NCBI GenBank assembly: GCA_907165135.1
Contig: OU015567.1
Location: 3,410,001 to 3,474,000 of the forward strand
Source of the DNA: Oikopleura dioica
Lineage: Eukaryota > Animalia > Chordata
Length of the DNA: 64,000 nucleotides
Reading direction: 5' to 3'
Shown: piece after piece, positions 13,097 to 40,194 of the stretch
Layout of the letters: the number at the start of each line of letters is the position of its first letter
Numbering within the stretch: the first letter of the stretch is position 1
Made by a program: the position numbers and the translations under genes
The notes under the pieces: generated by a model
The model's database searches: none
Seen by the model: the letters and a program-made list of their open reading frames with translations, nothing else
Told to the model about the DNA's origin: nothing

Positions 13097-13851
13097 TGTA
13101 ACTAAGACACTTGATGTATGCACTAGAGTTCGAAAGTCCTGCTCTGTTTTTATCCTAGGGCCTCAGCAAAAATACACGGATGTACTCGCTTGACTACTAG
13201 CAGTTAATAAAGGTGAACAAGCCTTAGTACGAAAGAGTAGATTCGTAGGGCTTGGTGGAGGAGAACTCTAATAGGTATAGAGCTCTATCGTCTTGTTTGT
13301 TGTTGGTTGTTTGCAAGTTGTTTTAGTTGCTGTTGTTTGTTGCGAAGTCAGTAAAAAGTCAAGTTGTTTTGTTTTTTGGGTTTCAAGTTAATGAATGAAT
13401 TTATTCCGAATTGTTACAGTTTATATAGGAGAACAGTGAGGGCGCAAAAGTGTACAGAGGGCGTTAAAGAGTGACTCTCGTGCACCATCGTTGGGCGTCG
13501 TTGGAGAATCTGGCCGTTGGCGAGGGCGCTAGTGTGTGAGAACCGAGTTGGTTGATTGACGTCAATTCTCAGGTGAGTAAGCCCTCTTATCAGTTGCATG
13601 TGCGTCATTGAGGCTTGGTTCTCAGGCGCCATCGTGAGTCAGAGCCAGGCGCGTGCCAGAGTTTGGGGGGGCGCTGTTGAGAGCCCGAAGCATGCGCTGG
13701 ATGAGTTCGGATGGCGCTCTTGCGCTGAGACATGAGCTCACTCGGCTGAGTGGATGCTCTTGCTGATTCACTGTCCTCATGGTGGACCTATATGGGAATT
13801 TGCCTACATCATGGGGCCTAATGGGGAAATATGGGGAAAGCCAGGCTTACA
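13097..13851 (-). repeat. 3' LTR (755 bp)
   Basis: Direct repeat of 30767-30951 plus 39441-40008. By eye the copies differ by 2 substitutions and one G-run length difference. Confidence 0.95.
13400..13427 (-). promoter_or_regulatory. LTR TATA box (TATATAAA, 13427-13420) and poly(A) signal (AATAAA, 13405-13400)
   Basis: Both motifs are read directly on the minus strand and also occur in the other LTR copy. Function is inferred. Confidence 0.55.
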
Positions 13852-13864
13852 TCCCCTCCCCTCC
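13852..13864 (-). other. Polypurine tract GGAGGGGAGGGGA
   Basis: Abuts the TG start of the 3' LTR on the minus strand. Confidence 0.9.
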
Positions 13865-13890
13865 AAGGAAGAAGGCTCCTTACGGGGCAT

Positions 13891-15309
13891 TTATTGGATT
13901 CGTTCAACAAGTCTGGCTCCTTGGGCGAATGCGAGGCGGTAGTACTTGATAGAATCTCGCTGCCCAAGTCGTTTCCACAAGATTTCCGCATTGCTGATGC
14001 GATTGAGTTTGTAGGAAGCAGATGGAAAGTTGAAGTAACGGAGCAGCAAGCCTGGGTCACAGAGGTATGTGGCCGTTATGCTCGCTCGGAAGAATCTTGG
14101 GAGGCATTTGAGTGGTAATGGGTCAGTTATTTTGAGAGGGAGGCCCCCTTTGTATATGGCAAGCTCAACTTGGCGATTCAGTCGTTTGATCATGTAAGTG
14201 GATAGGCATTCTCGATTGTTTGCGATGTCGGAAAGTGCCGATCTGATCTTTCGCCAGTCGTTTGCCTTTAGCGCTTTATCCAGGTCCCGTTTCGAAACTC
14301 CGCTCATTTTTTTCGGGTAGACCGTGATCTCTGATGGGCTGTACTTGTAAGGCATTCGCTGGTGCGGTTTGAGCTTTTCTTGTTTTAGCCATCGATTGCG
14401 GTCATTATTGAATTTAGAGCCAATCGCCGTTCTGTACGATGCTTGGCCAGTACCTGCATGAGGTCGGCTTGTTGCGTAGGCCTGATTGACTCTGTTTCCC
14501 TCGAAGTTTCGCTTTCTGTTATTCTGGCAGTTCAGGTGCGCGACTGAGCCACATTGAACTGGACATCGCCGCTGTCCACGCTCATTGTGTGTGTAGGTAA
14601 CTTCGAGCTTACCGAGATTTCGTCGCACTTGTCTGTCAAAATCTCGCCGGAGATCTGTTGGGTCAGATCCATTAGTTTTGAAGGCGGTTTCAACCGGGGT
14701 GTTCGGTGGATTTGGCTGTTCGATGATGACTTCGCCGGGCGAACAATCATCTTGTAGAGCTGATGGGTCTAACTCGTCTCGGCAAGGTGTGCCAGGCATT
14801 GTCTCTAAAGATGTAATGCTCATGGCGTCGCTTTCGGCGTGACTTTCGTCGGGCTCTTCATCGATGAATAAATCGGTTTCCATGGATTCGTCGTCGGAGC
14901 GGTTGCCTTGGTCCGTCAGGGAAACACTCATAAACTCATCGAGAGCCGCTTGATCTGTGTCGAAGACGTTGTCGTCGCCGTTTTCATAGTCCTCGTTGGT
15001 ATTGGACCTTTCGGTTTTCCAGGATCGGCTCGGTTGATCATCCGAAGTCGATTTTTCCTCGAAAGGAAAGTTGTTGGTAGGTTGGTTGGTTTGGTTTGTG
15101 TTTTGGTTTTGGTTATCCATTTTTAGATGGAGAGTTCGAATTCTCGCTCGTTTATATACTCTAGTGCTCTTGGGCGCCGCAGTGGGCATGGTGCCCTTGA
15201 GCGTATTGGGGGAGCAAGTGAGTAACTCATTGTGCCCTCTAAAGGGGCGCAACGGAGTAACTTGTAAAGGCCTAGATTCTCGTGGTAGGGCACGGTGGCG
15301 CTCTAGCAT
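13891..15309 (-). CDS. Orphan cargo ORF (472 aa; likely start MDNQ near 15120): acidic disordered half, knuckle-like motif, basic C-terminal domain
   Basis: Uninterrupted 1.4-kb ORF with motif CPVQCGSVAHLNC. Ends 26 nt before the PPT. Confidence 0.7.
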   Translation of the reverse strand: MLERHRALPRESRPLQVTPLRPFRGHNELLTCSPNTLKGTMPTAAPKSTRVYKRARIRTLHLKMDNQNQNTNQTNQPTNNFPFEEKSTSDDQPSRSWKTERSNTNEDYENGDDNVFDTDQAALDEFMSVSLTDQGNRSDDESMETDLFIDEEPDESHAESDAMSITSLETMPGTPCRDELDPSALQDDCSPGEVIIEQPNPPNTPVETAFKTNGSDPTDLRRDFDRQVRRNLGKLEVTYTHNERGQRRCPVQCGSVAHLNCQNNRKRNFEGNRVNQAYATSRPHAGTGQASYRTAIGSKFNNDRNRWLKQEKLKPHQRMPYKYSPSEITVYPKKMSGVSKRDLDKALKANDWRKIRSALSDIANNRECLSTYMIKRLNRQVELAIYKGGLPLKITDPLPLKCLPRFFRASITATYLCDPGLLLRYFNFPSASYKLNRISNAEILWKRLGQRDSIKYYRLAFAQGARLVERIQ

Positions 15310-15393
15310 GATTCATCGCAGTGCTTGGGATGGGAAAATGGTGGCGGTGTGCGTCACTGGTGATACCGCTGGTTCCCATGACGCATGGAGAAT

Positions 15394-16200
15394 CTAGCGC
15401 TTTGAAATATGAGATCTACACAATGGGCAAGTGTTATGATTGGCCGCCCATTGTTCTATACAAGCAGAATGGAAGAAATGACCACACGAGTCGATGAATG
15501 AGGCAGTTTCCTGCATTTTGAATTTGCAAATAGCACACTCCGAATTTTTATCATCTTCCTTTAGCTCTTTTTTAATCAGATCATTGATTCGAGAGTGGGC
15601 TGACATTCTTGTGCATGGATACGGTCTGTGTCTTCTGATCCAGGACGCAGGCGGTCTTCGGGTTCTGACCTGCCTTATATTTCTTCGATGACCCCAAATG
15701 ATTTTTCCGTCACGAGTAAGGGCCTCTGGCAGAAGTCTGCCCTCGGTGTCCCTTGGCGGGAGGTATGACCAACCGTTTGCCTGACCAATTTGAGGTCTGA
15801 ACATAGATCTCCATGAATTCAGATCTGGTGGATTCAATGTTTCATCATTTTCTAGTAAGTAGTCGGGTAGAACAATATCTCGTTCCACGGAGCTAGACCG
15901 ACCATTATTTGCATGGTTTATTTGTGATATATGGTTTGGGGAGATGATATCCCCGTCTGAATTGACATAGAGCGGGCGGTGGGCAGGCGGAAGTCCCCTT
16001 CGAGATTGAACTCCTACCCATCCGTTGGTAGATCTTGTTCGAATTAGATTAACAAAATTGTTTGACTGGGGTGAAGGCTCATTGTTTTCAGAATCATTGG
16101 TTTCTAATGGTGGGCCTTCCACAAAAGGAGAATTGCATAAATTGCAGTTGTGTGGATAGATGATAGGCCGAAAGGCATTGCACATTAAGCAGAAATGCAT
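15394..16200 (-). CDS. RNF115/RNF126-like RING-H2 E3 ubiquitin ligase, intronless, retroelement cargo
   Basis: N-terminal zinc ribbon FCLMC-x11-CNLCNSPFVE and C-terminal RING-H2 CAIC...CGHFFHSACIEQWAANHNTCPLCR. Confidence 0.85.
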   Translation of the reverse strand: MHFCLMCNAFRPIIYPHNCNLCNSPFVEGPPLETNDSENNEPSPQSNNFVNLIRTRSTNGWVGVQSRRGLPPAHRPLYVNSDGDIISPNHISQINHANNGRSSSVERDIVLPDYLLENDETLNPPDLNSWRSMFRPQIGQANGWSYLPPRDTEGRLLPEALTRDGKIIWGHRRNIRQVRTRRPPASWIRRHRPYPCTRMSAHSRINDLIKKELKEDDKNSECAICKFKMQETASFIDSCGHFFHSACIEQWAANHNTCPLCRSHISKR

Positions 16201-17414
16201 GTTTCGCCTAAAATAAAGTAAATATTCTGTTTAAGGTAGCCCCAGTGTGTCAGATATAAATATTTTCAAGACTTTTGGTTTTCGAAAATTTTAAATAACT
16301 GTCCAAAATTTTGATTTACAAGAGCAATTATTATAGCAACAACCTGCTCCAGGAGTGATTTAGATATAAAGTCTGTAAGTTTTATATTATTTATACCAAA
16401 ATTTTGGCTAAAAATGCCTTGAAAGGTTAATTCTGTGTTTTGCTGAAAACTCGACTTCGAGCGATCAGCAGACAATTATTTTATTGGAAATTACGTAAAA
16501 GGCTGTGACAAAAGTAAGATCTAGTCTAAATCTTCTATATAAGCCAATTTTGGAACGCTCAATTATTCCTAGATGCGTTTTATTAGCCTCTAAATTTTGA
16601 TAATTTTGGCCTCTATACCCTTAAAATAGACAATTTTTTAGGGATTTTTAGTGCTATATCAAGAATATTTTAACCGCTGAAGAGATTTTTGCTGGACTTT
16701 TTGTGCTAGAGAATTATCACGGCACGATTCATAAAAAAAACGGAAAATTTCAGAAACGAGTCTTGCACCAGAAGCGAGATTATGGAAGTTGAAGGAATTG
16801 TTGGCGCTCTGACTGTTACACTCGCGTATGAAGAAAAATTGAATACGAACAAACTCGTCAGACATCGGAAAATGTTTTACCGTTTTCGATTTTGGCTCGC
16901 ACACGCCGGCAAAAAATGCTGATCCATACAGACTAGGATCATTATCATGTTTGGATGCGGACACAAACAAGGCTTATTCCGTTCCTAAGTTTCAACTAGA
17001 AAAGAAAACTTCAAAGAAAATGAGTTACTCTCTTTGCTGTGCCTTTACTGTATTGAGAATACAATAATGTTAAAAGAACAGTTCCGCGAGCACTTGCGCT
17101 ATTGAAAACAATTATTGAATCTTTCCGAAAAAATGGTAGATTCAAAAGAGTCGATTTAATATTTTGAAATCAACCTTATTTCGAAAAATATTCTTTCAAA
17201 ATCCTCTTGTAGCGAGGCTTTGATTCTCAATTTGTTATTTGTGTTGAGCAGGAATTTTACGGTTTCCAGAAGCAAAAGATCAGCGGTCGGAATTAATCAG
17301 CGCGATCGAAAATAATTATTGACCGCACGTGCGCCTTAAATTTTGAGGGATTGAGATTTCTTTGGCTTTAATTATTTCTATCCTTAAAAAGGGATTTCAG
17401 GAAGAACTCGATCG

Positions 17415-17859
17415 GAAGTGAATGAAATGTTCGTTACTGGTCACTTCGGGCCGCCGAAACGGTTCTTTTTGGGAGAAGATGCGCTGATTGATAGCAAGAA
17501 TGGAATCGTTCTTGATGGCGGAAAGGTAATTTCGAAGCTCTTTGTTGTTCTAGACTCTTCATTTTAGTTGAAAATTTAGCTCTGGATAGTCTTCCAATAC
17601 TTCGATTAAAAACTAAATCTCGAATCCTATTTCACTGAAGACCTCTTTGAAAAAACGAGAAGATGGATACTTTTGCACTAGAATCTTTAACCACACCGAA
17701 TCATTGGACTGTATGCCCGATAGTAAAGGTAGAACGAAGTTATCCGCTGGTCAAACTGCCATGTTCGAGGAGACAGAGAAAATGCTCCGGGAGTTTTGTA
17801 AGAAGAGCTCAGAAGATCTTGAAAATACATTTGATCTGAAGCTGTCTTGGAACTTATAG
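17415..17859 (+). pseudogene. Decayed C-terminal fragment of a heparan-sulfate-type sulfotransferase (NDST/HS3ST-like)
   Basis: Translated pieces IVLDGG, LNLESYFTEDLF, REDGYFC...CMPDSKGRT...MLREFC...LENTFDLKLSW parallel the NDST/HS3ST tail (ILVLDG...FLG...KGFxC...CLGKSKGR...L..F...W). Has a GT-AG intron and frameshifts. Confidence 0.5.
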
Positions 17860-18239
17860 AAAAAGAAAATATTCATAACACAGTATTTAATAAAGTGCAA
17901 TATTCAATCCTTTCAAAAGAGTGTTTTTTCTTATTTGAATTAAAGTTGTCATTTGTGAAGGGATAAAACTTCTTTCGTAAAAATAGTACGGCTCCCTTTA
18001 AGCGAATTTCACGTAACCATTTGTTGCCATGGGTAAGTTTTCCATCACTGGCTTGAGAGCTTTCCTTTGTTGTTCAAGTAAAATTTGAGAAACATTCTGT
18101 AGGGCGATCGAAATGGAAAAATTGAAGGGAATGGAGCAATTGATCCCAAAGACGTTGCTTTTGGAAAATCTTATCGGAACGTTGTCGGCAAATTCTTAAG
18201 AGAAGAGGTTTTTGTCTTTCGAGGTTTAAGTAAGCGCCA

Positions 18240-18794
18240 TTGCATAATGGTGCCGGCAAGAAGGTTGAACTGCTAGGTTCGTTCATGCCGACTCTTGCGA
18301 GGGAGCTCTTGTGTTTCATGATTCTGACTTCTATTTCTGGGGGTTTTGGCCTTTTCTTTCTCACTCATCCTTCGGAAAAAAATTTGAAAAAAGAGACAAG
18401 CGGCATGTTAGAACCGATTGTAGTGGTAAATCTGCAACTTCCGCCGTGCCCGCATTGTTCCTCGAAACTTTTGCCCTATCCGTTCATCCCCTGGAATGCC
18501 CTGTGTTGCTCGATGTATTGTCCCGTCCCAATGTCATCTTTTGTAAGTTTAGAATTTAAAAGTAAAAATCTATTGAGTTTCAAACTATTAGATATTTATA
18601 TTTTTAATTTTCAGCTGATCCGAGATCAAGCCATCTTTGAACAGAGAGAGGATCAAAGTATTTGGTTCGTAACCTCCTTGCCGTTTGATCCGCAAAGCTT
18701 TGAGTGGCCTCGCTTTCGCGATCTATGTTACGAGCCCGAGGGCTGGAATTACATCCCTTTCCAGCCTTACCGGCCACGACAAAGTAATAATTGA
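18240..18794 (+). CDS. Small Cys-rich putative Zn-binding protein, unknown, antisense cargo
   Basis: CPHC...CCSMYC motif and a probable in-frame 72-nt GT-AG intron (18543-18614). Start uncertain. Confidence 0.4.
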   Translation: MHNGAGKKVELLGSFMPTLARELLCFMILTSISGGFGLFFLTHPSEKNLKKETSGMLEPIVVVNLQLPPCPHCSSKLLPYPFIPWNALCCSMYCPVPMSSFVSLEFKSKNLLSFKLLDIYIFNFQLIRDQAIFEQREDQSIWFVTSLPFDPQSFEWPRFRDLCYEPEGWNYIPFQPYRPRQSNN

Positions 18795-18854
18795 TTAATT
18801 ATAATGTTATTTTTACTAAAATAAGTTGTTCCGATTGCCAATGAGGAGCCGGAA

Positions 18855-20122
18855 ATGGCAGATGACAATGATCAGGGTGATCGAGTTTATGCGGAGCTTC
18901 ATCCAGTCGCTTCTGACGTTGAATCGGAAGATTCCACGCCAGAAGCAGATAGATATTACGCTGATAGCGACAATTTAACGGATGTCGAGCCGATGAGCAT
19001 TGACGGATTCGATCATTATGCAGATGATGAGGCTTCCATTGATGGGTAGATTCTGATTATTTTGATTAAAAGCACTGTGGTTGATTACACAGAATTAATT
19101 TTTTCATTAATTCTTTACAAAAATTCATCATGAAACAGTTCTTAAAATGGCTTTAATTCGCCAAAGAAAAATGAAATGTTGAATAATTGAGGCTCTAAGT
19201 AGCGCACTTGATTTCAGATAGTTCGGAGTAAACGGCAAACCGGCTAAAATTCTGGTGTGTCATTATTCGATAACAGCCAGGCGGTTTTGCTACAAAAACT
19301 ATCATTTATCCATCCTAATTTTTTAAAAAACTTAGAAGTTCTAATGTTTAATAAGCAGTTTTCCAAGTGAATCCGAAGAAGAAGAGGATGATAATGACGA
19401 CATGTCTGTTCACGACTACCGGTCCAGTCTCTTCTCTGATTCAGATTACGACGCAGATTTTGACGGTTTTGACGATTGGGACGGTGATATGGACGACGTC
19501 CCTCTTGATAGATTTGTTGATGAAGAATTCGAAGAAGCGGCACCAGGCATTCAGCCTTTGCTTCCTGAGGATCGCCTTGTTTACAGACAAGAATCAGAGC
19601 TACTCCGGGCCGACTATGATCCTGATCTTCAAGAGCTCTGGGATAGAAGGTACCGAACGGTCGAAGAAAACCGGGAGCTCGGAATCGATGTCTTTAACGG
19701 AGGTCCGCCACTTCAGACGCGTATTGAGTTTTTTGCGCCTCAGGTATTTTGATTCCCTTGGCTTTGATTTCTCGCGCTTTTTCTTTCTGACAGTCAAGTT
19801 TTTCCTTATCTTTCTCAAAAACAGAAACAAGCAGCATTCATCTGATTTCATGTGAAGAAATCTGGGTAACGTTTGAAGCATTGATTGGCTTGGAAAGTAT
19901 CGAAATTTTCAAATAACACTCATAAAACTAACATTTTACATTCTACACTTATTTACGTCGATTAAGGAGGAGTGTCAATTATGCGGTTCAATGTTTTCGA
20001 GAGGCGTACGTTCCGCTTGCCACGAGACGCATCTTCTATGTGAAACATGTGTGCGTGGGCTTGGCCCAAAAGGCCATTATATCTGCCCTTATGACAGAAA
20101 AACGAACCAGATCGTCGAATAA
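18855..20122 (+). CDS. Acidic protein with C-terminal RING finger (3 exons, 240 aa), antisense cargo
   Basis: Exons 18855-19045, 19368-19743 and 19967-20122 join in phase via GT-AG introns. Last exon reads CQLC...CHETHLLCETC...ICPYDR. It is absent from the supplied ORF track as a whole. Confidence 0.8.
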
Positions 20123-21726
20123 TTTTAGTTCTCTCTTTTTCCAAAATGACAATTTTTATTGAGTCTGATTTTCAATTACTGTAGTGCCTGTTATGGCAGA
20201 AAACTTCCTGAATAAAATAATGCGCAAAAACTTGCACTTGTTTCACTTAAAAAGCATTGAACGAAAAATTCGTTGTCAAAGACAAGCCAATCACGCATTC
20301 TTTCTTTTCTTTCTTTGCCTGAGTCAGGTTTTTATCAGTGATAAAGCAGCATCGAGGAGAGCTCGCAGAGTTTGAAAGGGGAAAAATCCGTTGAAAAAAA
20401 AAAAAACGTCGGAAAATGATGATTTTTGAAGAGATTTTTGAGCAGAAGGTCTGAGAAAATGCAGCTACAGTATTAGCAGTAACTGTCAGTTGCTTATGGT
20501 AATCTCGCGAGTGAAAATTAATACAAATAGAAAAAGCTCTCAAGTATAATTCCGCTATAAAATTTGGCGTATTTTTTCCAAAATGGAGTTCTTTCTGCCG
20601 AGAAGATCTTTTGAAAGCGATAAATTTTGAAAATTCAATTTTGCGAAAGGAAACTGTCGCCGAATATCAGGGCTCATTTTTTGCCGGACTAAGATTTGTG
20701 GAATCTCGTGGATTTCGATCAATACCCCTAGAACCTGCCTTTCCAGCATTTGAGAAAGCGCATTTTCCCAAAAATCACCTAATGCGAAATTATACGGAAT
20801 TAATGATTGATTTCTATACTGATTCAACTTTATTTTTTCTTGAGGGGACTTGTTCCTAAAGAAAGTATGACTAATCTTATCTTTGAAAGCCTCGATCTTC
20901 CAAATCAGTAATTTCAGATTGTGTTGGAAATCATGAATTCAGAGGAAATTCTAGCGAGAATCCCGAAAGAAATACTGGCACTCAAAATTATATGGAATAA
21001 AGGGGCATCCAACGTGCGAAATTTATTAGCTGTTTTATTTTATGTGCATTAGTGTAAAACTGGAGCAATCTTAGAGTAAATTTAAATTTTTAGCTCTTTT
21101 CCACGACTTTTTTTTGAAGAGAATTAAGGGTATCTAGCTCGTTAATTTAAATTCGGAGAAAGGAAATCGGAAACAGGGGATCTTTGAGTTCGAAGCTTTT
21201 TGTTGCATCTTTCTCACGAACTTGCTTCGTGACTCTTAGAACGTGAGATTACTGCACTAGCGCGTTCGTCACACGGCTTGTGTGTGGCGCCCATGTGAAC
21301 AAAGAAAGCAAGAAAGGATTCTCATCCCAGCCTAAGCCACCTGAGTTCAAGTTTTACTTGCTTAATAATAATCCAGGCATCTAGATTTGAGAATATATTA
21401 ACCAGTCATTCTTTCGTCAGAGAACGTATTATAATTTAAAATATTTGAACAATTACGAATTCATATTAACAAAAACTGCCTTTTAACGCTTCAAAAATGA
21501 CGTCTAATTACGATATTCTCGCACTTAAAAAGCATTTAGGGGACGGTTACCAGGGAAATGACCTCGAGTGAACTAAAATTCGCGCTTCTCGTCGAAAATA
21601 CACTCATGAAAATGAAAAATTGATTGATCAACTTCCTTACGCCGTTTCAGAAAGAACTCGTCGGACATTCAGAAATTGCTGAATCAAAAATTGAAAAAGA
21701 ACCCTTGATTAAATTAGCGCTGGTTC

Positions 21727-21794
21727 TGCTGGGTAGCTCAAGGCGAGAGCGCTGTCTTGTACAGAGGTTGAGGGTTCAAGTCCTTCTCCGGCAA
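21727..21794 (+). tRNA. tRNA-like element (tRNA-Thr(UGU)-like) with shortened anticodon arm
   Basis: Acceptor TGCTGGG/TCCGGCA, D arm GCTC/GAGC, T arm GAGGG-TTCAAGT-CCTTC, A- and B-box-like sequences. The anticodon arm is only CTGT-CTTGT-ACAG. Length 68 nt. Confidence 0.55.
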
Positions 21795-22527
21795 GCGAAA
21801 ATTTGAAACAGGGTCTTCTTTGATTTTTTGATTTTTGAACTTTAAATGATTAGTCTATCGAAGCTATTCTGTTGGATGTCAATCTTCCCACGAGTTCTAG
21901 AGTCACGTGAACACGTGCTGAGTACAAATCAGAAATTCCAAAAACATTGGTACGCGCATCAACTATAATGTGTTTCGATAGATACAGGCGAGTTCGAGAA
22001 AAGTTGACATTACGCCAGACGGGCATTCAGCGAGTTTCGCATTTTGTTGTTTCGCGGCCACATGATTGGAATATTATGAATTTTTCAAAGGAAATTACTA
22101 ACAAGTTAAATGGAGCTGTATATTTGCATTTGTCTAGGGAATCTAGCGCGCGTATCGACAGATTAAGTACAGTACGGCTTCAGCTGCTCAATCTTGCTCC
22201 TTTTTGACGAGCAGAATCACTCTTTTCCAGATGGAGATTTTGCAAGTCGGAATGCATCAATAAACAAGCCCATTATCACGAGATTTTTCTTACTTTTGGG
22301 CTGATTGAAAGGAAGAGTCGCATGAGTCCGACTAAAAACCGATTCTGCTGTTGATTAACTGCGATTTACAAGAGAATTGAATAATTTCCGGGCATTAAAA
22401 TTGAATTATGTGATTAATAGTAGGCACATTTAGATCTAACTAGGATTTATTTGTACGAATCATAAGAGATACCCTAAATCGATGTTGGCACCCGTAAAAT
22501 GAATGGTTTTCAAAATAAAGCATGGCG

Positions 22528-24663
22528 TTATAATTCATCAATTTTCGGTTCAATTTGTTCAATTTTCCGGCTCTTTCTGCACAATTTTGTACAGTTAGAT
22601 GTACAGTAATTCTCTTTTAAATAATTTATCAAATGCGCATGTTGTTTCCGCCTTTGTTGCTTTTCTAAATCTCGAATAGTGACCATTTTATGTTTTTGTT
22701 TTTGCAGAGAATAAAAATAAAGTGCTAGAAATAAGAATGCAAAAAGAGATATAGTAATAATGTTACTAAATTCGTTTTTATATCTATAATAAAAGGTCTT
22801 ATTTTTATCAGAATGAAAAGTCGTATAAGTGAGATTATGGTGAATCAAAATAGTACTATTTTCTAAATCATTTTGAAAGTTAACCACGATGTCATCGTAA
22901 TTTTTCTGGATCTCTAGAAAACTCATTATTTGTGTTCCACACTGAAGGTTCAATTTATGATTCCACCTTCTTAATTTTGTTATCCCAACTGGGCTAAACG
23001 TTGCTTTCTCGAGTTTTTCTTTGGGAAAATGGCTTGACTCTAATGGTGAGATCTTTGGGACTGTAAAATGGGAGATCCAAACTGTATCTTCTGACATAAC
23101 AAAAGCACATGGTTTCTTAAGGTGCATTTTCTCGAAGCATGATTCTAGCGATTTTGACTGTATAATTTCGTTAAAGCATTTTATTTTTGGATCGTTTATG
23201 TCTAATTGCTCGTAATTACAATAAATTGAATCTAGAAATTTTGGGCATTTATCGATATTGAATGTATATTCCTGGAAGCTAGCCACTATTTTTGGAACAA
23301 ATGCTTTTCGAAAGACAAAATAATCGTCACTTCGGTGGTCTGGGACAGGAATATTATTTATTCTTCTAGTATCGTCCATTTTCCACAATAACGGGTGAGT
23401 AAATTCTATATAAAATTGAAGCAAGATTTAATTATGCGCTTTGGTTGCTGCGATGTTAACGAGTCGATAGTTTTGTTATTTATATTTGTGAGCCAAATTT
23501 CCCGGTGTTTTACTTTGGATACTATTGATTATTTCAGTCACTTCACTCCTAAAATTCGTAAAATGCTCAAAAATTATATTTCTAAAGTGATTTTCAGTGA
23601 TTGCTTCTATCAAGGAACATTCTTGTTGGATTAATTTGTTTAAAGAGACTTTATTATGATAGACGTTTTGTTGGAGATCTTCGATGTTTGATCTCTCATC
23701 GGCAATAATATTTTTCAAGTCTTTCGTTGATTGGTAATTCAAAAATGATGTTGACAGCGCTGCCAGGCTCAGAATGCTACCTAACCCGCGGGGTTTTCTA
23801 TCCAAAACTGGATCAAAGGTTTTAACAGCTGTGATGTTATAAATAACGAATGAGAGACAGTTCCGATTGTAGTCAAACTCGGCGGGGCCCATGCCGGGTT
23901 CGTGGCTTGTCTCAAACTCGAAAGTTACTGTTGGATTCTGAGATTGGGAATTCCCGAAAGGTAAGAAAAAATAGCTGTGTCCATCTTTTTCAGTCTCAAG
24001 AATGGCTTTTTCGTTGTCTGATGCAAAAATTTGAATCGAATTTTTACGAAGTGAAGCTGTATTAAGAAGGACTGCGTCGGCTGGCTCTTGTAACTGGAGT
24101 GAGTAAGTCAACCGAATAGTCCCTTTGTCGGTGCTGTTCCGACATTGTTCAAGTGGTGAATATCCTGAGGCTCTTATTTGATCAATAATTGAGTCCGAAG
24201 TTAGCGTTTTTCGACAATTTTCATTTACACAGATTGCGCTCTCGGAATTTTTTATGAGAATATCTTTAATAACAATTTCTTTTTCATTTTCGAGAAGAGA
24301 GAGCTCGTTATTGATCAAATGGCGGGCGGATACATCCTCCATGTGGATGTTCTCCAATTTTAGCCAATGAGCGTAGTTACGGTTCATTTCGTGCTCATAG
24401 ATTTTGCTCAGGTTTTTTCGAATATTAACGCAATTGTGCGTTTCCTCATTGAAATCAGTGAAGGGGGCATTAATGTCGATCACGAAGGTGCGGCGGACCT
24501 CGTCGGAGATGAAGTAGGCGCCAGGGCCGTACTCGGATATCTCCAGCCCGCTTTCCATCGGATCGGCGCATGCAACCCTTATAAGAATGAAGGAGATGAA
24601 GATTCTACATCTTGTAATTGATCTTCTTCCGAGATCTGAGGTTGTAAGCTTTGTCTTCCTCAT
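22528..24663 (-). pseudogene. env: env-like fusion glycoprotein, interrupted at ~23430-23500
   Basis: Signal peptide ending ACA/DP, furin site RKPR then hydrophobic GLGSILSLAALS, heptad repeat, Cys-rich ectodomain, TM IITISLFAFLFLALYFY and basic tail. The two ORFs are separated by stops or compensating frameshifts. Confidence 0.85.
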
Positions 24664-30387: not shown

Positions 30388-30753
30388 ATTCTTACCTTTT
30401 CGTAGTTGTTTCTTCGTTGACTGTGATGGATTCCTTACGGAAGCTACAAGAAGAGATCAAAAGAAGAAGAAGATCGATTTGTGGACAAGAGCTTCTTTCG
30501 ATGGCGAAAGTAGGGAATCAAACAGATAAGACTGAACGTTGTCAGTTAAGGTTCGTAACCTATATGACTATTGTAGTCCACACAAAAGTTTTTCCTCAAT
30601 GTGTTGTTGAGGGTTCTTTTATGTCCTTGCTTCCCTTTTCAGGTATAGGCTAAGACGGAGTTCGTGAAAAAACACGAGACTATTAAAAGAGTCCGTTAAC
30701 GTAAATAAAAGCTTATTGGAAAGCCTGGGTCTACGATAACGTGGATTTCGAAA

Positions 30754-30765
30754 CTTCAGTCACCA
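30754..30765 (-). other. Primer-binding site TGGTGACTGAAG
   Basis: Starts 1 nt after the 5' LTR end. The first 7 nt complement the GUCACCA 3' end typical of eukaryotic tRNA-Trp; primer identity is not confirmed. Confidence 0.7.
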
Positions 30766-30766
30766 A

Positions 30767-30951
30767 TGTAACTAAGACACTTGATGTATGCACTAGAGTT
30801 CGAAAGTCCTGCTCTGTTTTTATCCTAGGGCCTCAGCGAAAATACACGGATGTACTCGCTTGACTACTAGCAGTTAATAAAGGTGAACAAGCCTTAGTAC
30901 GAAAGAGTAGATTCGTAGGGCTTGGTGGAGGAGAACTCTAATAGGTATAGA
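30767..30951 (-). repeat. 5' LTR, U5-side part (up to the hAT insertion)
   Basis: Matches 13097-13281 with one substitution. Confidence 0.95.
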
Positions 30952-30979
30952 CAGGCATATAAATTTCGTTCGAAAACCC

Positions 30980-31378
30980 AAAGCGAACGCGAAGCGAAAG
31001 CGAAAAATTTTCCCAGCCAAAAAGCGAAGCGAAAGCGAAGCGAACGCAAATCTTGCACAGCGAAGCGAAAGCGAATTCGCCAAGCGAAAAATTCGCCAAG
31101 AGCGAAAAATTCGCCAAAAGCGAAAAATTCGCCAAAAGTGAAACTTCGCCAAGAGTGAAAATTCGCCAAAAGCGAAAATTCGCCAAAAGCGAAAATTCGC
31201 CAAAAGCGAAAATTCGCCGAAAGCGAAAATTCGCCGAAAGCGAAAATTCGCGGAAAGTAAAAATTCGCCAAAAGAGAAAATTCGCAAAAAGTAAAAATTC
31301 GCCAAAAGCGAAAATTCGCCAAAAGCGAAAATTCGCCAAGAGCGAAAATTCGCCAAAAACTGAAATTCGCCGAAAATG
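30980..31378. repeat. Left subterminal array of (A)GCGAAAATTCGCC-type repeats
   Basis: Many near-palindromic GCGAA-N2-TTCGC units; produces the spurious repetitive ORFs in the track. Confidence 0.9.
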
Positions 31379-31600
31379 AAAGATAAATTTGAATAAAACG
31401 CGGGGTTAAAAGACTTTTTTTTTATTTGTGAGTTACGAGAATATCAGTAACGGGAGTGAAATTAAGTTTTCAATGTTTTGAACTTGGAATAAAAAATATC
31501 AGTTTTTTCAGTAGAGCGGATTCGGCGCATTTTTGTGACAGTGAAAATGAGGCTAAAAAATCGGCGGAATTGTGCAAACTGGAAACGAGTGGGAGGATTT

Positions 31601-31730
31601 GCGCAGACAGATTCGCGCGGACAGGTTTGCGCAGACAGGTTTGCGCAGACAGGTTCGCTCAGACAGGTTCGCGCAGACAGGTTCGCGCAGACAGGTTTTC
31701 GCAGTCAGTTTCTCGCGGACAGGTTTGCGC
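31601..31730. repeat. 14-bp minisatellite GCGCAGACAGGTTY, about 9 copies
   Basis: Read directly in the sequence. Confidence 0.85.
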
Positions 31731-31860
31731 AAGTTTGAGTGCGGAAAGGAAGCGCGAAGAGAAGTCAAGTTTTTCTTTTTCAATCAAAGGAGGGCATCAA
31801 GGAGTCAATAAGAAAGCTAAAAACAATTGTTTAGGTACTTTTATTTGACAATTATCTCAC

Positions 31861-34735
31861 CTAAGAAGAATAAGGCAGACCTTCGAGTTCTAAGGTTTTT
31901 TTCAGTGTTGCTGTAAACTGTCGGTATTTCGCCGTGATTGCTAGATGCGCAATATGTTCGCAAGTTTGGTTACATCGATGCTTGTCCAAATCATAGTCCA
32001 TAACCGCGAATGATCTTTCTATTGTTGCGGATGTAGATGGCAAACTCGCAATCTAAAGTCGGGTGAAAATCTGTCTGATATAAAAGTTTTACCTTAAGAG
32101 CAACTTCCGAAAGCATCGGCCATCTTTCTTTTTGTTGATTCCAGTACAGAAGAAGGATTTCCGAATAGAAATTTGCAGCACAAGGATCGAGTTTCTTGGT
32201 TTTGACTGTGCTTTTGATCCATTCGGGGAAGGCCTGGTCGTTCTCATATTGCGCAATCTGGTCCTGAATCTTTTCGAGGTTGGTTCTTGGTTCTCTTCGT
32301 TGATTCTGTTTTTGCGCAACGAGAGGCTGATCTTCTGGGTCGAATCTGAGTTGATTTGTCATCATTTGGGTCACTTCCTGCGATGCGGTGTTTTCGTCAG
32401 TCTGTTCACTCTCGGCTTCCGGAAAAGTTTGCGCAAACGATTCGATGAACTCTTTTGCCTCGGATTGCCATGTCTGGACTTGTTCTTTCAGAATTGAAAG
32501 ATTCTCCGAGTAAAACTCATCCTTAGAAGTGCCGCGCGATTCCAGTGCTTTCTGCGCATCCCCAAGTCTACACCGTCGAGATTGCCATTGAAGGAAGAGT
32601 GCGGCCTTATGGGCGTCGTTGATGCGTACAGGCTCGTTTTTTCCTTTTTCGAGGGTTTTTGCTTCCTGAATTGTGCCGTCTTTCTTCTTGTGTCTTGGTA
32701 CGAACACTTTCCCGCAGATCATCAGCATAGTCTTTCTTATTCCTGCTCGCGCAAGAATGGAAAGGTATTCGGTGGTAGTCTGCTCGTTAGGAAACTGAAG
32801 ATCCACATTGCAGAAGAAAACAAGGAGTCTTTCGCATGCCAGGATCGATTCGATGATCTATAATAAACGTGTTATTTTTGAGATTACGAACAAGAAATCA
32901 TAGATGAGTATATTTACCTTGCTAGAATCCTTTTCGCATTCCTTTTGGAGGAAGTGAAGCTCGCGCAAAATTATCTCCTTCGCCTTTATCCATTTAAAAC
33001 ATGGAAGAAACTGGACGGCCGGAGCAAGATGTTGCGGGATATCATCTCCAGTCTCGTATCTCAGCTTCATGAAGTTCTTTTCATGCGCAGCAAGCGTGCT
33101 GTACTTTTCGAAATCAGAAGAGAATCTGATACTTCTGTAGCTCGACTAAATTATTAGTTGGACAAGTTTGCGCAAATTATACTTACTTTTAGCTTTGGAT
33201 AAGTTGCTACTTTTTTCAAGGCTTCTTCTGCGCTGATGTCTCCTTTGTGTGACTGCTTGTAAATTCGCAATGCATCTGAAGACGTCATCGCAACAGTCTT
33301 GAGATATTTAGCCACGCTTTTTGGCTCTCCAGGTGGACCTGAGACAGTTTTCTTGCAGGCTTTAAGAAACTCGGTGATGTCCTCTTCATGTTGAGCTGGG
33401 GTGAGAAAAATGGATGATTCTTCAGAGATGAAGATTCTTGCATTGTTTTGAATGCTCTCAGACAAACAGTTGAGACTGTGCAGCCAGCAGATTGTGAAGA
33501 CCAAAGTGTTTTCCTCCATGATTCCTCTAATTTGGAGTCTGCGACAAAATTGACACGTTTGGCGTTCCAGACATCGGTGAGGCCATAAGACTAAAGATAA
33601 TTATGAGGATCATTATGCGCAAACTCTGCGCTAGTTTTGCGCAAATATTTCCGGTTAGCAAAGCCTACCTTGAGAACGTCAGCCAAGATTCTGGAAGTTG
33701 TCTCGTCATCAGTTGTCTCAGATCCCACAAAGTCGAGGGTTATGTTTGAATTCAAAGATCCTCGTTGGAGATGGATGAGAATCGAGAGACCATTTTTGCA
33801 TCCATCTTTGGTGAGCCCTTGGATAGACTTGTGATCGCCACTCAGAGTTACGATTCCTCTCCGACACAGCTCGGGAACGTTCTTGGAAACGATCTTCTTT
33901 AAATTCTCTGCGCATTTTTTTAACTCTTGCTTCGACCCGTAGCTGGAGGTGGGTCCAAAATCGCGAAGCACGTCAGGATTGACTCCAACCGAGGCCAGCA
34001 AATGTCGATCTCGCTCGACTACCTCCGATCTAGATATATATAAGGACATGAATGCGCAATCATGGACAAACTTTTGCCAGAAACCAAGGCTAAGATGTTG
34101 GCTTGCAATTACCGCCGCATTGTTTTCTCGATGAGTTTCCTTGTCATGATCTTTGATTTTCGGGAGTCTAGCGAAACTTCTGAACTGACTGGATTGCGCA
34201 AGCTCTTGTTGATTCGGCTGGACGTTCTTGTGCTTTGTTCGCAGATGGCTTCGAACTAAAAGTAAATAAGCGCTAGAATAGAAGGAGATTCTCTTACGAG
34301 CATCTTTTTTGATGTTGTATTCTTGACCAGATTTTTTCTCGTAGGCTCTGAAAGGCTTGTTCTTGTCTGCGCAGAATCCGACGCAGCGAAGCCAGCCGCA
34401 AAAGTGATTCTTGTAGAAGAGAGCTTCAAGTCCTTCCAATGTACGTGGATGGTCATCAGATGTCTGGAGCCCGCGGAGAACATCTTGAAAAATATCAATG
34501 GAAATCAAGGAAGAGAAAAATTACCAGTAGTCATGTCTCGCTCCATAATTGAGCGCCACTCGCCTGTCGCCGAAAATTTTTCGTACCATTTCCTTGACCC
34601 GGCCTGCGCAAAAAATTCCGGCGTCAAAATTTCGGTTTCTTCGTCTGAACTTGAGATTTCTAGAGTTTCATTCTCATCGTCAGGTCTCGGTCTCTTAGGA
34701 GGCTTTGAAAACTTGAGTTTTGTTTGCTTTGACAT
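31861..34735 (-). CDS. hAT-family transposase (multi-exon)
   Basis: Basic NLS-like start, BED-like C..C..HLRTKH, TLSGDH (D1), VADS (D2), CWLHSLN (CxxH), RSIRF, AALFL, YWNQQKERWPMLSEVAL and PSTSATIERSF (E; dimerization domain). Short introns. Confidence 0.85.
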
Positions 34736-35414
34736 GGCTCCTTGCCATGCGGCGCTCTCTGGCTTCTGGCAGGACCCGGTTGGGCTCGGGGGAAATTCTG
34801 GGCTCGTAATGTGAGAAAAAGAAAGCGTAGGTGCAAGTCCGGCTCCTAAATGGCCATTGTAAAAAATGCGCAGAATCCGGGGGATGTTTATTGGACATAC
34901 GAAAATACGCAACTCTTGCGCAATTTTAGTCCATGCTGATGGATGATTCACTCAGCGATGATATTTCTTATGGGCCCTGAGTGCGTCAGATTCAGCCAAA
35001 AGTTGAACAAAAAACGAGCAAAAAAGTTGGACATAGGATAGATTTCAATCTCGTAATCCCAGTAATTCTATAATCGACACTACCTTTCTTAAAATGCCCA
35101 GTTTTGGGTGGTTTCCGGTATTTCTTCCTCAATTTTGTCTTGATTTGCTGAACTAGGCCAAATAGAGAATCAAGCTCGTCATCCCCTTTCCACCACTTGG
35201 GAGCACGTTGCCATTGGCATGTCAAAACTGACTCAATATCATCAACGTAAACAGAGTCATCTGTATTGTACCCGTCAAAATCAGCATATTTCTTCGTTGG
35301 AGATTAGTTTTTAAATAGAAAATTTACAGCTAGAAATTAAATTTAAAATTAACCCTAATAGAAAGCGGCAAAACGACTGTATTCTTCAATACTTGCTCAA
35401 TAATTTTTAGCCCT

Positions 35415-38210
35415 GCATAAAGTGAACTTGTATCAGTAGGCAGCAATGGTGTGAGCATTTAGTTTTATTCGGCGCGAGTGGGGTCCTTCATTTTGAGGAA
35501 CTGAAAGATGTCACCAAACTGTTTGCGGAGACCTTTCTGATCGTCAGAGGGGCCCTGGGGAGTGAGGAAGATGACTTGGGCGCCCGGATTAGTTTATGCG
35601 TAGCGGCACAAGATCTAATTTTGAAGTAAGCATTAAAAAATATCTTGGTTCATACGTGAGTCGCCATATGTTTGTGGTGGGCATCCATGTAAACATCGAA
35701 CTTATCAATGCATCGAAATGGCGAGCTTGTAGCGTGCCAAATCGCGATGAGAAGGATGACCGTGCTGATGCTTCGCTCCCCTCCGGAGAGAGTCGCTGTG
35801 TTGGCCTTATTCATGCCCATTTCTGAGAGGGCTTCCATGTCAATCGTTTGGTCACCGATGATCTTCGACATGTTTATGGTGATCGCTGAATTATTTTTAG
35901 CAATCGAGAATCAACAATTTGATCCTTTTATCAAATAGAACTCACTTCCTTGGCTTTGGCTTTAAGCGTTGAGGTCGAATTTCTCTGGGATGATTTTACA
36001 CTCGCCCTCGTATTTGTTTCCTCGGCAGATGTGGCTAAAGAAGTGGGAGACTCGTTGAGCTTGATCCTCAACACTTGTTGGCTATTGAGCTCCGAGAGGC
36101 GAATTCTCACTGCAGCTTCTATCTTCCCAGTGGCCTGATATTTATAAATAGTAAGAGTTAAAAAATAAAACCGACGATTTGACGAGCCTTGAGATTTGGC
36201 TTTTTCTTCTTGTAGGTCTCGGCTGCTTACTCCGCGGTTCGCTTGATGTCTTCGTAATCCTTGTCGGAGCTCTTGACATTGATTTTCAAGTCACGAGAGA
36301 TCTTCTCCCGCTCGTCAGTCAGCAGCTTTTTCGTAAGCGGTTTGGTTGGGCGCTCGCAGTGGCTTTCCGCGATTTGAATGGCGTTTTCAGCTTCCTTCTT
36401 CCATTTCTCCACGTCAGCCTTTTTCGCGACGATCGTATCTTCGACTTCTTTCTTCGCCAGCTTGATCTCCTTCAGTTCCTTCTCGATTTTCCTGGCGTCA
36501 TTTTCCCTGCGAAGTTTTCGTGCTTCTAGGGCCACAAGCTCTTTTGTCGAGCATTTCTCCCTCACGAGCGCAAACCTTTTTTCATCAATCTTGCGTTCAG
36601 CGTATTCCATTCTTTCTTCGATGCCTACAAGTTGATCTTTCTTCGCATCGGTCTCTGCCTGGCTGTGATGAATCTCGGTCATCAACTGCGCATGACGGCC
36701 GTCAGTATTGACAACGAGTTCTCGGAGCTGCTTCTCAAAATGCTCATCTTTCCTCATGCATCCCTTGATCAGATTATCTAAGTTTGCACGAATCTGCTCC
36801 TTCTTTCTTTTAACGTCCTTCTTTTCGCCAGCTCTTTTCTGCCATTTTTTGAAATCATTCTGATAGGCCTCGTGCTCCCGTTTCGCTTGTCCAAGATCCT
36901 AAAAATATCGTGTTTGAGCACTTGTTAGTCGACTACTGATTGCCAATCAGTGATTGGTAATAGACAAACTAAAAAAGACAAATTACCCTTGCATTCTTGT
37001 CGGTGATACTCTGGAAATCATTGGACTCGCACAGATAACGCGCAACGAGATCGTTACTTCCTCCACTGATACCAGAACGGTACTTGAACTCGCCGCCTTT
37101 CGTGGTAAGCACACTCGGGTAGTTCGATCCCCCGGGGTTACTTACTTCGGACTGACCAATGTCCTGAGCAGCCTCTTCTGAACAGGCTGGCTGACACATT
37201 ATAGTTTTACTATAATTAAAAGTAGACTAACTCAGTTTCATCTTGTCCTCCAGAGTGAATACGATGTATCCATGGAGAGTGGTGGCAAGTTGTTTCTCGA
37301 TAACACCGGCGTATTTTTGGTAGCTATCGTGAATATCAATGTGATTGCCAATCGGGCCAACAGGCTCCTTAATCCACCAGTTCCAATCTTCCGGGCAATC
37401 TCCCCGGCGTAAGGACCAAACTTATTTTCTTTCGCCGAGGATCGTCGTCGGATCTCGTCCCTTTCCCGCTCTAACTCTTGAATGCGCTTCTCGCCTTGAT
37501 GGATGGCAGCCCTGGCTCCGTCGATATTCTAGACAATTATCTCCAATTGCTCTCTAGCTTCTAACATGGTAGGCTCTACTTCCTCAACCAACTTGAGTTT
37601 TTTCTCTTCCATTAGTTCACGATTAGCAAGACGCGCTTCCTTCAATTGAGCCTGTTTCTCGACGACAGGGTTGTCCTTGTAAGACTTCAGCTGACGCTTG
37701 CAGTTGGTGATCTTTCATTCAGCGTGAGTAATATCATCCTCCAGCTTTGACTTTAAGCGAAGGTCTTTGTTTTGCTTGGCCTCCTGCTTCTTCTGCTCCT
37801 TTTCCAACGCGCTCACTTTGTCCTTAAAGTCCTTCAACTCCGCCCTTAAAAATTAAATCAACAAAAAGAGTCAATAAAGAAGTAAAGAATAAAGAAGTAA
37901 GGAAAAAATACTTACTGGATTTTAACACGGTCTCGTTCATCCACTCCATCATCCTGGTTAAAAAGGAGTGCCTGTTTATCTTTGTCTCGATCCACGACCC
38001 GTTCCAAAAGGTTCTCGTAGTCTCTCGGAAACCTTTTTTTGGCTTTCTTTAACTGCGCCTCAGCAAGAGGCACTTCCGTCCACTTTTCCAAACTGTCGAG
38101 TTGGAGTTGTCTGGCTTGAGCACTTCAACTGTTTCTCCTTCTGCTCCTCCCAATTATCGCGCATTTCGTTGTAGCTGCTCTTGAGCTCAATTTTGAAGGC
38201 CCTTTGAGAA
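35415..38210 (-). pseudogene. smc6: Captured Smc6 gene fragment (coiled coil, hinge, coiled coil, C-terminal ATPase half) with introns, stops and frameshifts
   Basis: Hinge EPVGPIGNHIDI..YAGVIEKQL..LHGYIV. Signature [18 protein letters not shown]...[14 protein letters not shown] and QVIFLTPQ. No Walker A seen. Confidence 0.85.
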
Positions 38211-38255
38211 GTAAATTTGAGAAGAAAATATGAGTTTGGTTAGTTATTTTTTGTT

Positions 38256-38864
38256 TTATTCATTTTCAAAAGAATGAAAACGTCCAGACTCGCGACAGAA
38301 AGGGCATGTTTTCTGTCGCCAGTTCTGAGCACAGGTGTTACAGAGAACATGAGTGGAATGACAATATTCATAGGCAGTATTTTTCTTGAGGAAGATGGAG
38401 AAGTTGCTTGAATCGAGTTCGTGAACGTAGCATATTTTGCACTCCCCGGTTGCTTCATTTTGCGCTTTTTTCATTTCTTCGTGGATTTCCTTGACTTTCT
38501 TCGCTGCTGATTTTTCTGACTTTTTCTTGAGCGATTTGTTGACTGCATCGATGAATGTAGGATTGAGAATGTAGTCCATGATGTCTTCGAATGTTTTCGT
38601 AAACGTCTTCTTGTCTATGTTTTCGCAATCCCATAGCACACGGACCTCGTATCTTTTTTCTTTTTCTTGTATATTTTTCGTTCCTGGATCACTTCTTACT
38701 CCGTCAAATTCGACTGTCCATTCTCGGTCTTGATTCCAGTCGTATTGAGCAAAATCCATTGCTTGAAATGGCTTTTGAAGAAAATGGTCAACTTGCAAAT
38801 GTCTCGAAAGAGAATTTCTCGGGCCGATCCACCAGCACATTTGACATTTTAAAATTTCTGACAT
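38256..38864 (-). CDS. C2H2-like zinc finger plus RING-HC protein (202 aa), hAT cargo
   Basis: CQMC...RHLQVDH at the N-terminus and CKIC...CHSTHVLCNTC...CPFCR at the C-terminus. Open frame. Confidence 0.75.
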   Translation of the reverse strand: MSEILKCQMCWWIGPRNSLSRHLQVDHFLQKPFQAMDFAQYDWNQDREWTVEFDGVRSDPGTKNIQEKEKRYEVRVLWDCENIDKKTFTKTFEDIMDYILNPTFIDAVNKSLKKKSEKSAAKKVKEIHEEMKKAQNEATGECKICYVHELDSSNFSIFLKKNTAYEYCHSTHVLCNTCAQNWRQKTCPFCRESGRFHSFENE

Positions 38865-39082
38865 TTTTGTTTACTATTTTTGTTTTGATTTGAGAACTGA
38901 CTTTCCGGTTTGAATTTATTGCAGAGAACATCTGCTGAAAAGGTGGCGCAGACTTCCGCAGATAATTTAAACGATGATTTTTTTTGATCTTGATGAAAGA
39001 AAATTGCAATCTGCCTATTAAATAATCAGTGATGAAACATTAATACCGCTTTGAAAGATAAAAACATAAGATTCGGCGAAAT

Positions 39083-39420
39083 CTTAGCGAAAGGGAACTC
39101 TTGGCGAAAGCGAACTCTTGGCGAAAGCGAACTCTTGGCGAAAACGAGAATTTGGCGAAAGCGAAATTAAAGCGAAATTTTGGCGAAAGCGAACTTTTGG
39201 CGAAAATTAGGGCTTAGCGAAAGCGAAATTTTGGCGAAGATTCGCCATAAGCGAAAATTTGGCGAAAGCGAGGTCTCGGCGAAAGCGAATTTTTGGCGAA
39301 AATCGGGGACAAAAAGCGAAAGCGAAGCGAATATTCGGAGTGTCATTTTCGGGGGGCGAAAGCGAAATTTTCGATTCGCTTTCGCTTCGCTTTCGCTTTT
39401 GGCGAAAATCGCCAAGCGAA
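39083..39420. repeat. Right subterminal array (GGCGAAAGCGAA...), inverted relative to the left array
   Basis: Read directly in the sequence. Confidence 0.9.
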
Positions 39421-39432
39421 TTTATATGCCTG

Positions 39433-40008
39433 GGTATAGAGCTCTATCGTCTTGTTTGTTGTTGGTTGTTTGCAAGTTGTTTTAGTTGCTGTTGTTTGTT
39501 GCGAAGTCAGTAAAAAGTCAAGTTGTTTTGTTTTTTGGGTTTCAAGTTAATGAATGAATTTATTCCGAATTGTTACAGTTTATATAGGAGAACAGTGAGG
39601 GCGCAAAAGTGTACAGAGGGCGTTAAAGAGTGACTCTCGTGCACCATCGTTGGGCGTCGTTGGAGAATCTGGCCGTTGGCGAGGGCGCTAGTGTGTGAGA
39701 ACCGAGTTGGTTGATTGACGTCAATTCTCAGGTGAGTAAGCCCTCTTATCAGTTGCATGTGCGTCATTGAGGCTTGGTTCTCAGGCGCCATCGTGAGTCA
39801 GAGCCAGGCGCGTGCCAGAGTTTGGGGGCGCTGTTGAGAGCCCGAAGCATGCGCTGGATGAGTTCGGATGGCGCTCTTGCGCTGAGACATGAGCTCACTC
39901 GGCTGAGTGGATGCTCTTGCTGATTCACTGTCCTCATGGTGGACCTATATGGGAATTTGCCTACATCATGGGGCTTAATGGGGAAATATGGGGAAAGCCA
40001 GGCTTACA
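39433..40008 (-). repeat. 5' LTR, U3-side part
   Basis: Matches 13274-13851 and ends GGCTTACA, followed by the TSD GACTG. Confidence 0.95.
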
Positions 40009-40194
40009 GACTGCTCGTGTAAAGACAGTTTATACCTGCTCTGTTGCCCTTGCATTTTACTTGCTCTTCCTTTCAGTTTGCTTTATGAGGCGATCGTTGT
40101 TGAAGGATTTCAAAACAAGTGCGCCTGTAAATTCTGTTTTGACGATTATGATGATGATGATGATGAGTCATCAAATATTTCTGATGAAAATTAA
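40009..40194 (+). pseudogene. 3' part of the host gene disrupted by the LTR element
   Basis: DCSCKDSLYLLCCPCILLALPF...CACKFCFDDYDDDDDESSNISDEN* is in frame with 12839-13096. Confidence 0.8.

Follow-up and report, generated by a model that had tools for sequence, protein, structure and literature searches.

A 64,000-nucleotide (nt) stretch of the Oikopleura dioica genome (assembly OKI2018_I69, GCA_907165135.1, contig OU015567.1, positions 3,410,001 to 3,474,000 of the forward strand; hereafter the window, whose own numbering is used throughout) contains a minus-strand retroelement of the Ty3/gypsy type, in which 8,663 nt of sequence belonging to none of gag, pol or env stand between the env-like gene and the purine tract next to the 3' long terminal repeat (LTR). 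The reading that we favour, doubting it about as much as we believe it, is that this copy is a defective, cargo-bearing unit of Tor-like kind, which acquired passenger DNA and integrated together with it as one. Tor elements are Ty3/gypsy retrotransposons of Oikopleura that possess env, and published descriptions give them gag, pol and env alone (Henriet et al. 2015, PMC4402516). A first-pass annotation of the same DNA had proposed a giant env-bearing element with an accessory gene module biased toward ubiquitin ligases; a single copy cannot show the cargo to be a working accessory module.

The ends of the element are marked by the following features, listed by position.

13092-13096, no strand: left copy of the target-site duplication, GACTG (identical bases at 40009-40013).
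13097-13851, minus strand: 3' LTR (repeat families, piecewise comparison).
13852-13864, minus strand: polypurine tract (sequence reading, scan of the internal region).
30748-30765, minus strand: primer-binding site (sequence reading).
30767-30951, minus strand: inner piece of the 5' LTR, 185 nt (1 mismatch against the 3' LTR).
39433-40008, minus strand: outer piece of the 5' LTR, 576 nt, beginning with a duplicated 8 bp (1 mismatch and one 2-nt insertion or deletion, indel, against the 3' LTR).
40009-40013, no strand: right copy of the target-site duplication, GACTG (sequence reading).

Repeat finding combined with reading of the sequence gives a 3' LTR of 755 nt with TG...CA ends, and repeat finding places the 5' LTR in two pieces. 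The two LTRs were compared piece by piece, the gap of the split 5' LTR being left unclosed. The inner piece departs from the 3' LTR at one position in 185 nt and the outer piece by one mismatch and the indel in 578 nt, so that the pair as a whole shows 2 mismatches and one 2-nt indel over ~755 nt and is, by this piecewise count, ~99.6% alike. The matching LTRs of the first-pass annotation are thus near-identical, with the amendment that the 5' copy is split by a transposon. Directly outside both LTR ends lies the 5-bp duplication that had been noted as a single pair; a match of this kind at fixed ends has a chance of 1/1024. The primer-binding site starts with TGG and lies one base inside the edge of the 5' LTR, and the polypurine tract, G-rich and 13 nt long, adjoins the 3' LTR and is the sole such tract in the internal region, as the earlier description of both signals had it. 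Plus-strand open frames run up to the insertion site on both flanks (12807-13096 and 40009-40191), which agrees with the proposed insertion into an open frame. The encoded sequence is acidic on the left, and on the right Cys-rich and then acidic. Pfam returned no match for the flank frames on either side, and the stretch covered by the gene table (3891-25120 of the window) holds no annotated gene on the left flank.

The interruption of the 5' LTR is itself a well-delimited insertion.

30952-39432, no strand: nested DNA transposon (inverted ends, tandem arrays, 8-bp duplication, unfilled site in the 3' LTR).

This transposon measures 8,481 nt and has perfect terminal inverted repeats of 14 nt and subterminal 17-nt tandem arrays. 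The octamer GGTATAGA is duplicated at its two borders (30944-30951 and 39433-39440) and occurs once in the intact 3' LTR, which thus preserves the unfilled site. Once the nested transposon is subtracted, the element is ~18.4 kb long within a structure of 27 kb; the size given earlier holds only after this correction. An 8-bp duplication together with short terminal inverted repeats is a hAT-like structure, and Pfam found no hAT or other transposase domain in 18 open reading frame (ORF) pieces. Its minus-strand ORF pieces add up to about 5 kb without a single Pfam domain, tandem arrays of 17 nt and 14 nt lie near its ends, and it may belong to a DNA transposon family of O. dioica that has yet to be classified.

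Between the LTRs, the canonical genes follow one another on the minus strand.

28467-30387, minus strand: gag region (CCHC knuckles, three frames).
24605-28470, minus strand: pol (Pfam, match to Ty3 Gag-Pol, metagenome relatives).
22528-24663, minus strand: env-like gene (signal-like start, membrane span, cysteines, sequons).

Pfam identified three CCHC knuckles in the gag region, whose coding stretches fall in three different frames and which would accordingly contain two frame changes if gag was once continuous; its N-terminal part had no match in the PDB. In pol, protease, reverse transcriptase, RNase H and integrase were all recognised by Pfam, and one frameshift is present. Among solved structures, Pol is matched best by yeast Ty3 Gag-Pol (7q5b, E = 2.9e-34). 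In protein searches the closest sequences were metagenome ORFs of ~1,290 amino acids (aa), 65-73% identical, followed by generic Ty3/gypsy polyproteins at 22-31%, and no named Tor element was among the Pol matches. The apparent spacer between pol and env proved to be the C-terminal ~200 residues of Pol, out of frame (55% identity to a relative, E = 7e-72), and the start of env falls inside this part of pol. The Ty3/gypsy assignment made at first pass therefore stands: the copy has LTRs with a target-site duplication, a primer-binding site and a polypurine tract, CCHC knuckles in gag, and protease, reverse transcriptase, RNase H and integrase in the order of the Metaviridae type.

The env-like gene spans 712 codons with two in-frame stops. 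Its product begins like a signal peptide, contains 17 cysteines and 7 N-glycosylation sequons and has a single membrane span, which is C-terminal. In the Env proteins of Tor3b and Tor4b, the membrane anchor is preceded by a furin-type cleavage site, and an F-x-G tripeptide and an N-[LV]-G motif are present as well (PMC4402516); each of these three had zero matches in the 712-codon span. The architecture would fit a membrane-anchored glycoprotein of Env kind, but the gene had no match in Pfam or the PDB, and its reading frame is twice interrupted.

As assembled, gag, pol and env are all broken, and because of this the copy as assembled cannot supply any of the three products. Some of the breaks may be assembly errors, since the assembly is Nanopore-based with Illumina polishing (PMC8008620). 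The same consideration underlies a more far-reaching alternative, that pieces of one Tor copy, or of two, are separated by unrelated DNA owing to a chimeric join or a collapse. In its favour, 99% of the reads fall below 42.8 kb (PMC8008620), polishing works poorly in repeats, and the gag and pol frameshifts are typical of such errors. We nevertheless regard an artefact as very improbable: the same 5-bp duplication is found at the outer ends, with the flanking frame open on both sides, the clean 8-bp duplication of the nested transposon matches the unfilled site in the other LTR, and the entire 27-kb structure is within read length. A reading in which two separate Tor copies enclose host DNA is rejected, since the outer duplications match.

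The cargo occupies 13865-22527 and comprises the following features.

13891-15309, minus strand: 472-codon ORF, containing the annotated 409-aa gene (annotation, homologue family).
15394-16200, minus strand: 268-aa RING-H2 ORF (Pfam, PDB matches).
16201-22527, no strand: distal cargo block (GC ~0.31-0.42, frame scans).
18855-19752, plus strand: antisense spliced gene (annotation table).
19967-20119, plus strand: RING-like piece, possibly a further exon of the antisense gene (sub-threshold Pfam match, in-frame GT and AG sites).
21727-21794, plus strand: tRNA-like relic (Rfam RF00005, 43.2 bits; none by ARAGORN).

The extra region of ~8.7 kb between env and the 3' LTR is thus present as first described, and it resembles no other part of the window, either as DNA or as protein. 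By composition it splits in two at a sharp GC step near 16.2 kb, the GC fraction being 0.47-0.52 from 13865 to ~16200 and 0.31-0.42 from ~16200 to 22527, compared with 0.30-0.44 in gag-pol-env. No LTR fragments, second purine tract or remnants of gag, pol or env lie inside the cargo, and repeat scans together with a dedicated search recovered inverted ends and duplication pairs at chance level only, so that no candidate for a nested element with its own inverted repeats and target-site duplication rose above chance.

These results bear on a second alternative, in which the element arrived with gag, pol and env alone and was joined later by part of the cargo, the 6.3-kb distal block being the likeliest candidate, through nested unclassified repeats or through DNA repair or duplication. 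In favour of such a history, one large nested insertion is already present in the element, 44% of the repeats in the O. dioica OKI genome are unclassified (PMC8008620), the GC step is sharp, and the tRNA-like relic could be the head of a short interspersed nuclear element. It is unlikely all the same, as no sub-block is marked above chance by inverted ends, duplications, LTRs or poly-purine ends, the ~0.4% difference between the LTRs is too small to allow much time for several insertions or any time for the loss of their hallmarks, and the block adjoining the purine tract would be left unexplained. The cargo has no hallmarks of nested elements, whereas the proven nested transposon has crisp ones, and this supports integration of the element as a single unit.

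The proximal, GC-rich part of the cargo holds two uninterrupted ORFs in the sense orientation of the element. The first, of 472 codons, ends 26 nt from the purine tract, and because of this proximity the cargo can be regarded as contiguous with the 3' end of the element. In its product, an N-terminus that is acidic and disordered precedes a C-terminal domain of ~175 aa, which is helical and conserved. In the RNA-seq-guided annotation (PMC8008620) it appears as a gene of 409 aa at 13891-15120. A TATA-like motif ~30 nt before the annotated ATG (15120-15160, minus strand), read by eye, could be an internal promoter.

This ORF had been called an orphan; it is not, as homologues exist. An exhaustive HMMER search returned 15 representatives of the 409-aa family, among them the three paralogues g17108, g17090 and g17194, all annotated in the Y-specific region of this assembly, one fragment from Bergen and many marine-metagenome ORFs. 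All members are single ORFs, and they share the ~175-aa C-terminal domain, with 12 invariant columns, behind variable acidic N-termini. The closest paralogue, Y-region gene g17108, is 92% identical over 327 residues. After residue 327, g17108 (P0002, O. dioica OKI2018_I69 YSR) changes into a CaMK-like kinase fragment, which probably reflects a chimeric gene model or else a truncated copy adjoining a kinase exon. Pfam, applied to 24 family members, detected nothing but the kinase piece in this one chimeric model. AlphaFold predicts the C-terminal domain with a pLDDT (predicted local distance difference test) of 87 and a pTM (predicted template modelling score) of 0.80, and Foldseek searches of the PDB and BFVD, using both the whole 409-aa model and the domain alone, found no relative (best E 0.2-1.2). 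The ORF is accordingly one of a conserved larvacean family of proteins that has no name, and its domain, as modelled, has a confidently predicted fold without a solved relative.

The second sense ORF encodes 268 aa, is intronless and ends in a complete C-terminal RING-H2 domain of the C3H2C3 type. The domain scores above the cut-off for Pfam zf-RING_2 (E = 6e-12), matches the RING-H2 regular expression completely and has PDB matches among RING-H2 proteins (EL5, RNF165, Arkadia and RNF4), from which the product is predicted to be a RING-type E3 ubiquitin ligase. Beyond the RING domain no relative was found, and the ORF is absent from the annotation. Directly before its ATG, a pyrimidine tract followed by AG (16201-16215, minus strand), again read by eye, could serve as a splice acceptor.

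The earlier description counted two RING-ligase genes. The 268-aa ORF is solid, but the second candidate, the plus-strand RING-like piece in the distal block, lies below the Pfam threshold (zf-RING_5, E = 0.028, 14.8 bits against a cut-off of 27.9), and the position of its last metal ligand is not a Cys. Within the nested transposon, a 202-aa ORF (38256-38864, minus strand) is C2H2-like at its start and weakly RING-like at its end, and its core resembles the cargo piece at 19967-20119 (41% over 29 aa). RING-like ORFs are thus present in both mobile elements.

The distal block, ~6.3 kb long and AT-rich, has this weak RING-like piece as its sole domain signal. It contains an annotated, spliced plus-strand gene, antisense to the element, with an acidic product of 191 aa; this gene model was searched exon by exon. 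A good GT donor lies 9 nt before the end of the annotated gene (19743-19967 region), and an AG at 19965-19966 would carry its frame into the RING-like piece; because such a GT..AG pair would continue the frame, the annotated stop may be intronic. The interval 16150-22560 has 56 frames that reach 45 aa or more, and no other protein signal emerged from the 50 on which Pfam was run. A sulfotransferase remnant, listed at first pass, was rejected, having given no signal in these frames or in two PDB searches, and the Cys-rich ORF reported from the cargo likewise found no support. The tRNA-like fold fared better: Rfam recognises it, but its anticodon loop is truncated and too short, and ARAGORN finds no tRNA there, which makes it a relic.

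Taken together, a single transposed unit is the simplest reading of the whole, because there is one duplication pair, the LTRs are near-identical and the purine tract directly adjoins the cargo; the first-pass proposal that everything between the LTRs moved together is upheld to this extent. The unlike composition of the cargo and gag-pol-env counts for passenger DNA, as do the broken gag, pol and env and the lack of any such cargo in the Tor elements published so far (PMC4402516). The cargo would have been acquired before the present insertion, because its nearest 409-aa paralogue is 92% identical while the LTRs differ by ~0.4%. Passage through the RNA of the element would fit as well, because the sense ORFs are intronless while the antisense gene keeps its intron, a contrast that rests on three genes and hence on a small sample.

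On this evidence we propose the following course of events. An ancestor of the copy may have acquired the cargo by read-through, template switching or recombination with a co-packaged RNA. The AT-rich 6.3-kb block, with its antisense spliced gene and tRNA-like relic, resembles captured genomic DNA, and the two intact intronless sense ORFs of the GC-rich 2.3-kb block would obtain 3'-end formation from the 3' LTR. A Tor-like Ty3/gypsy provirus would then recently have integrated into the minus strand as one unit with ~8.7 kb of cargo inside, and an 8.5-kb DNA transposon would later have entered its 5' LTR. Any spread of the element with its cargo would probably depend on proteins from other copies.

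Several points weigh against this account. No donor locus was identified for the cargo, the evidence comes from one copy, and some of the gene breaks on which the diagnosis of a defective element draws may be errors of a Nanopore-based assembly (PMC8008620). The 92% identical paralogue implies a cargo-bearing lineage and not a one-off event. An ORF end 26 nt from the polypurine tract, a TATA-like motif and an acceptor-like site are, moreover, tidy for accidental passengers, and both sense ORFs are intact when the element's own genes are not.

Much of this would be expected of a true complex retrovirus-like element. Under this alternative, at least the RING-H2 ORF and the 409-aa-family ORF would serve the element as accessory genes, being conserved in a Tor lineage and expressed through spliced or internal transcripts. 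Neither ORF is interrupted or contains an intron, and both lie in sense orientation, close up against the purine tract; in the 409-aa family, conservation extends to 12 invariant C-terminal columns, the fold is modelled with confidence, and every member is a single ORF. Its annotated paralogues lie in a repeat-rich Y-specific region, the nearest of them places the origin of the cargo before the insertion, and extra ORFs in LTR elements have precedents (PMC5408684, PMC11963269, PMC10309623). We still consider such an accessory module doubtful. A single copy is seen, the 268-aa ORF is unannotated and has no homologue beyond its RING domain, and, as judged by their lengths, the source contigs of the Pol relatives and of the 409-aa-family members never coincide. 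No fourth gene appears in the Tor literature (PMC4402516), the composition of the cargo differs from that of gag-pol-env, and 6.3 kb of it lack a coding signal. The module biased toward ubiquitin ligases is consequently not established: one RING is robust, the 6.3-kb block is without coding signal bar one antisense gene, and the copy is defective. With similar reserve we mention the broader idea that a chordate Ty3/gypsy lineage evolved an accessory block made of a RING-H2 ligase and a new helical fold, with the 409-aa family as a signature of such elements across larvaceans.

Elsewhere in the window, 22 overlapping repeat copies with 9- and 12-nt spacing lie at 8303-8728, inside a 480-aa minus-strand ORF. 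This array is a coding short-period repeat, and an annotated gene spans 8323-9293.

The Oikopleura genome ranks among the most compact in animals and retains few transposon families, and Tor elements are its main retrovirus-like residents. Here, a copy has been doubled in length by foreign DNA and yet is cleanly integrated, which would mean that Tor-like elements can move host-like genes in a genome under strong pressure to stay small. Should both intact ORFs recur in other copies, they would be rare accessory genes in a retroelement of a non-vertebrate chordate, and the element would provide the first genomic context for a conserved protein family of unknown fold.

Complex retroviruses carry accessory genes near the 3' LTR, and the element resembles them in having small ORFs between env and the 3' LTR that end close to the polypurine tract. 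Unlike theirs, its ORFs have no sequence or fold relation to viral proteins. Among plant LTR elements, the Ogre type of Ty3/gypsy has a long region from pol to the 3' LTR, and maize Bs1 has captured a host gene. Plant Retand elements, also Ty3/gypsy, similarly have a very long region from the last canonical gene to the 3' LTR, with extra ORFs that include antisense ones, and some of their copies are non-autonomous (PMC11963269). In Retand, however, this region is family-wide and contains a conserved antisense domain, TRP28 (PMC11963269), whereas here a single copy has its intact ORFs on the sense strand. A modularly acquired gene for an additional protein is shared with the ORF3s of bdelloid rotifers (PMC5408684) and CERV of Caenorhabditis elegans Cer1 (PMC10309623), although those genes replace env or occupy its position and recur across copies, while the extra ORFs of the present element lie downstream of an env-like gene. 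As in host-gene capture by crocodilian endogenous retroviruses, foreign, intronless, sense coding sequence stands between LTRs, in a carrier that there too is often defective (PMC4299795). Known captures usually involve one processed mRNA of 1-2 kb; this one amounts to 8.7 kb and includes an antisense, intron-bearing gene and non-coding DNA.

The closest comparison is with the Tor elements themselves (PMC4402516), with which the present copy has in common its host, O. dioica, LTRs flanked by duplications of 4-5 bp, near-identical LTR pairs, and gag and pol followed by a third gene, whose predicted product resembles a membrane-anchored glycoprotein. Its env starts within the end of pol, as in the Tor groups that have no spacer, and the pol-env spacer of the Tor4b type is absent. 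It differs from Tor3b and Tor4b in that the Env motifs reported for them are absent from its env-like gene, and its nearest Pol relatives are the 65-73% identical metagenome ORFs and not named Tor elements. What sets it most plainly apart from every published Tor is the additional 8.7 kb that it carries before the 3' LTR.

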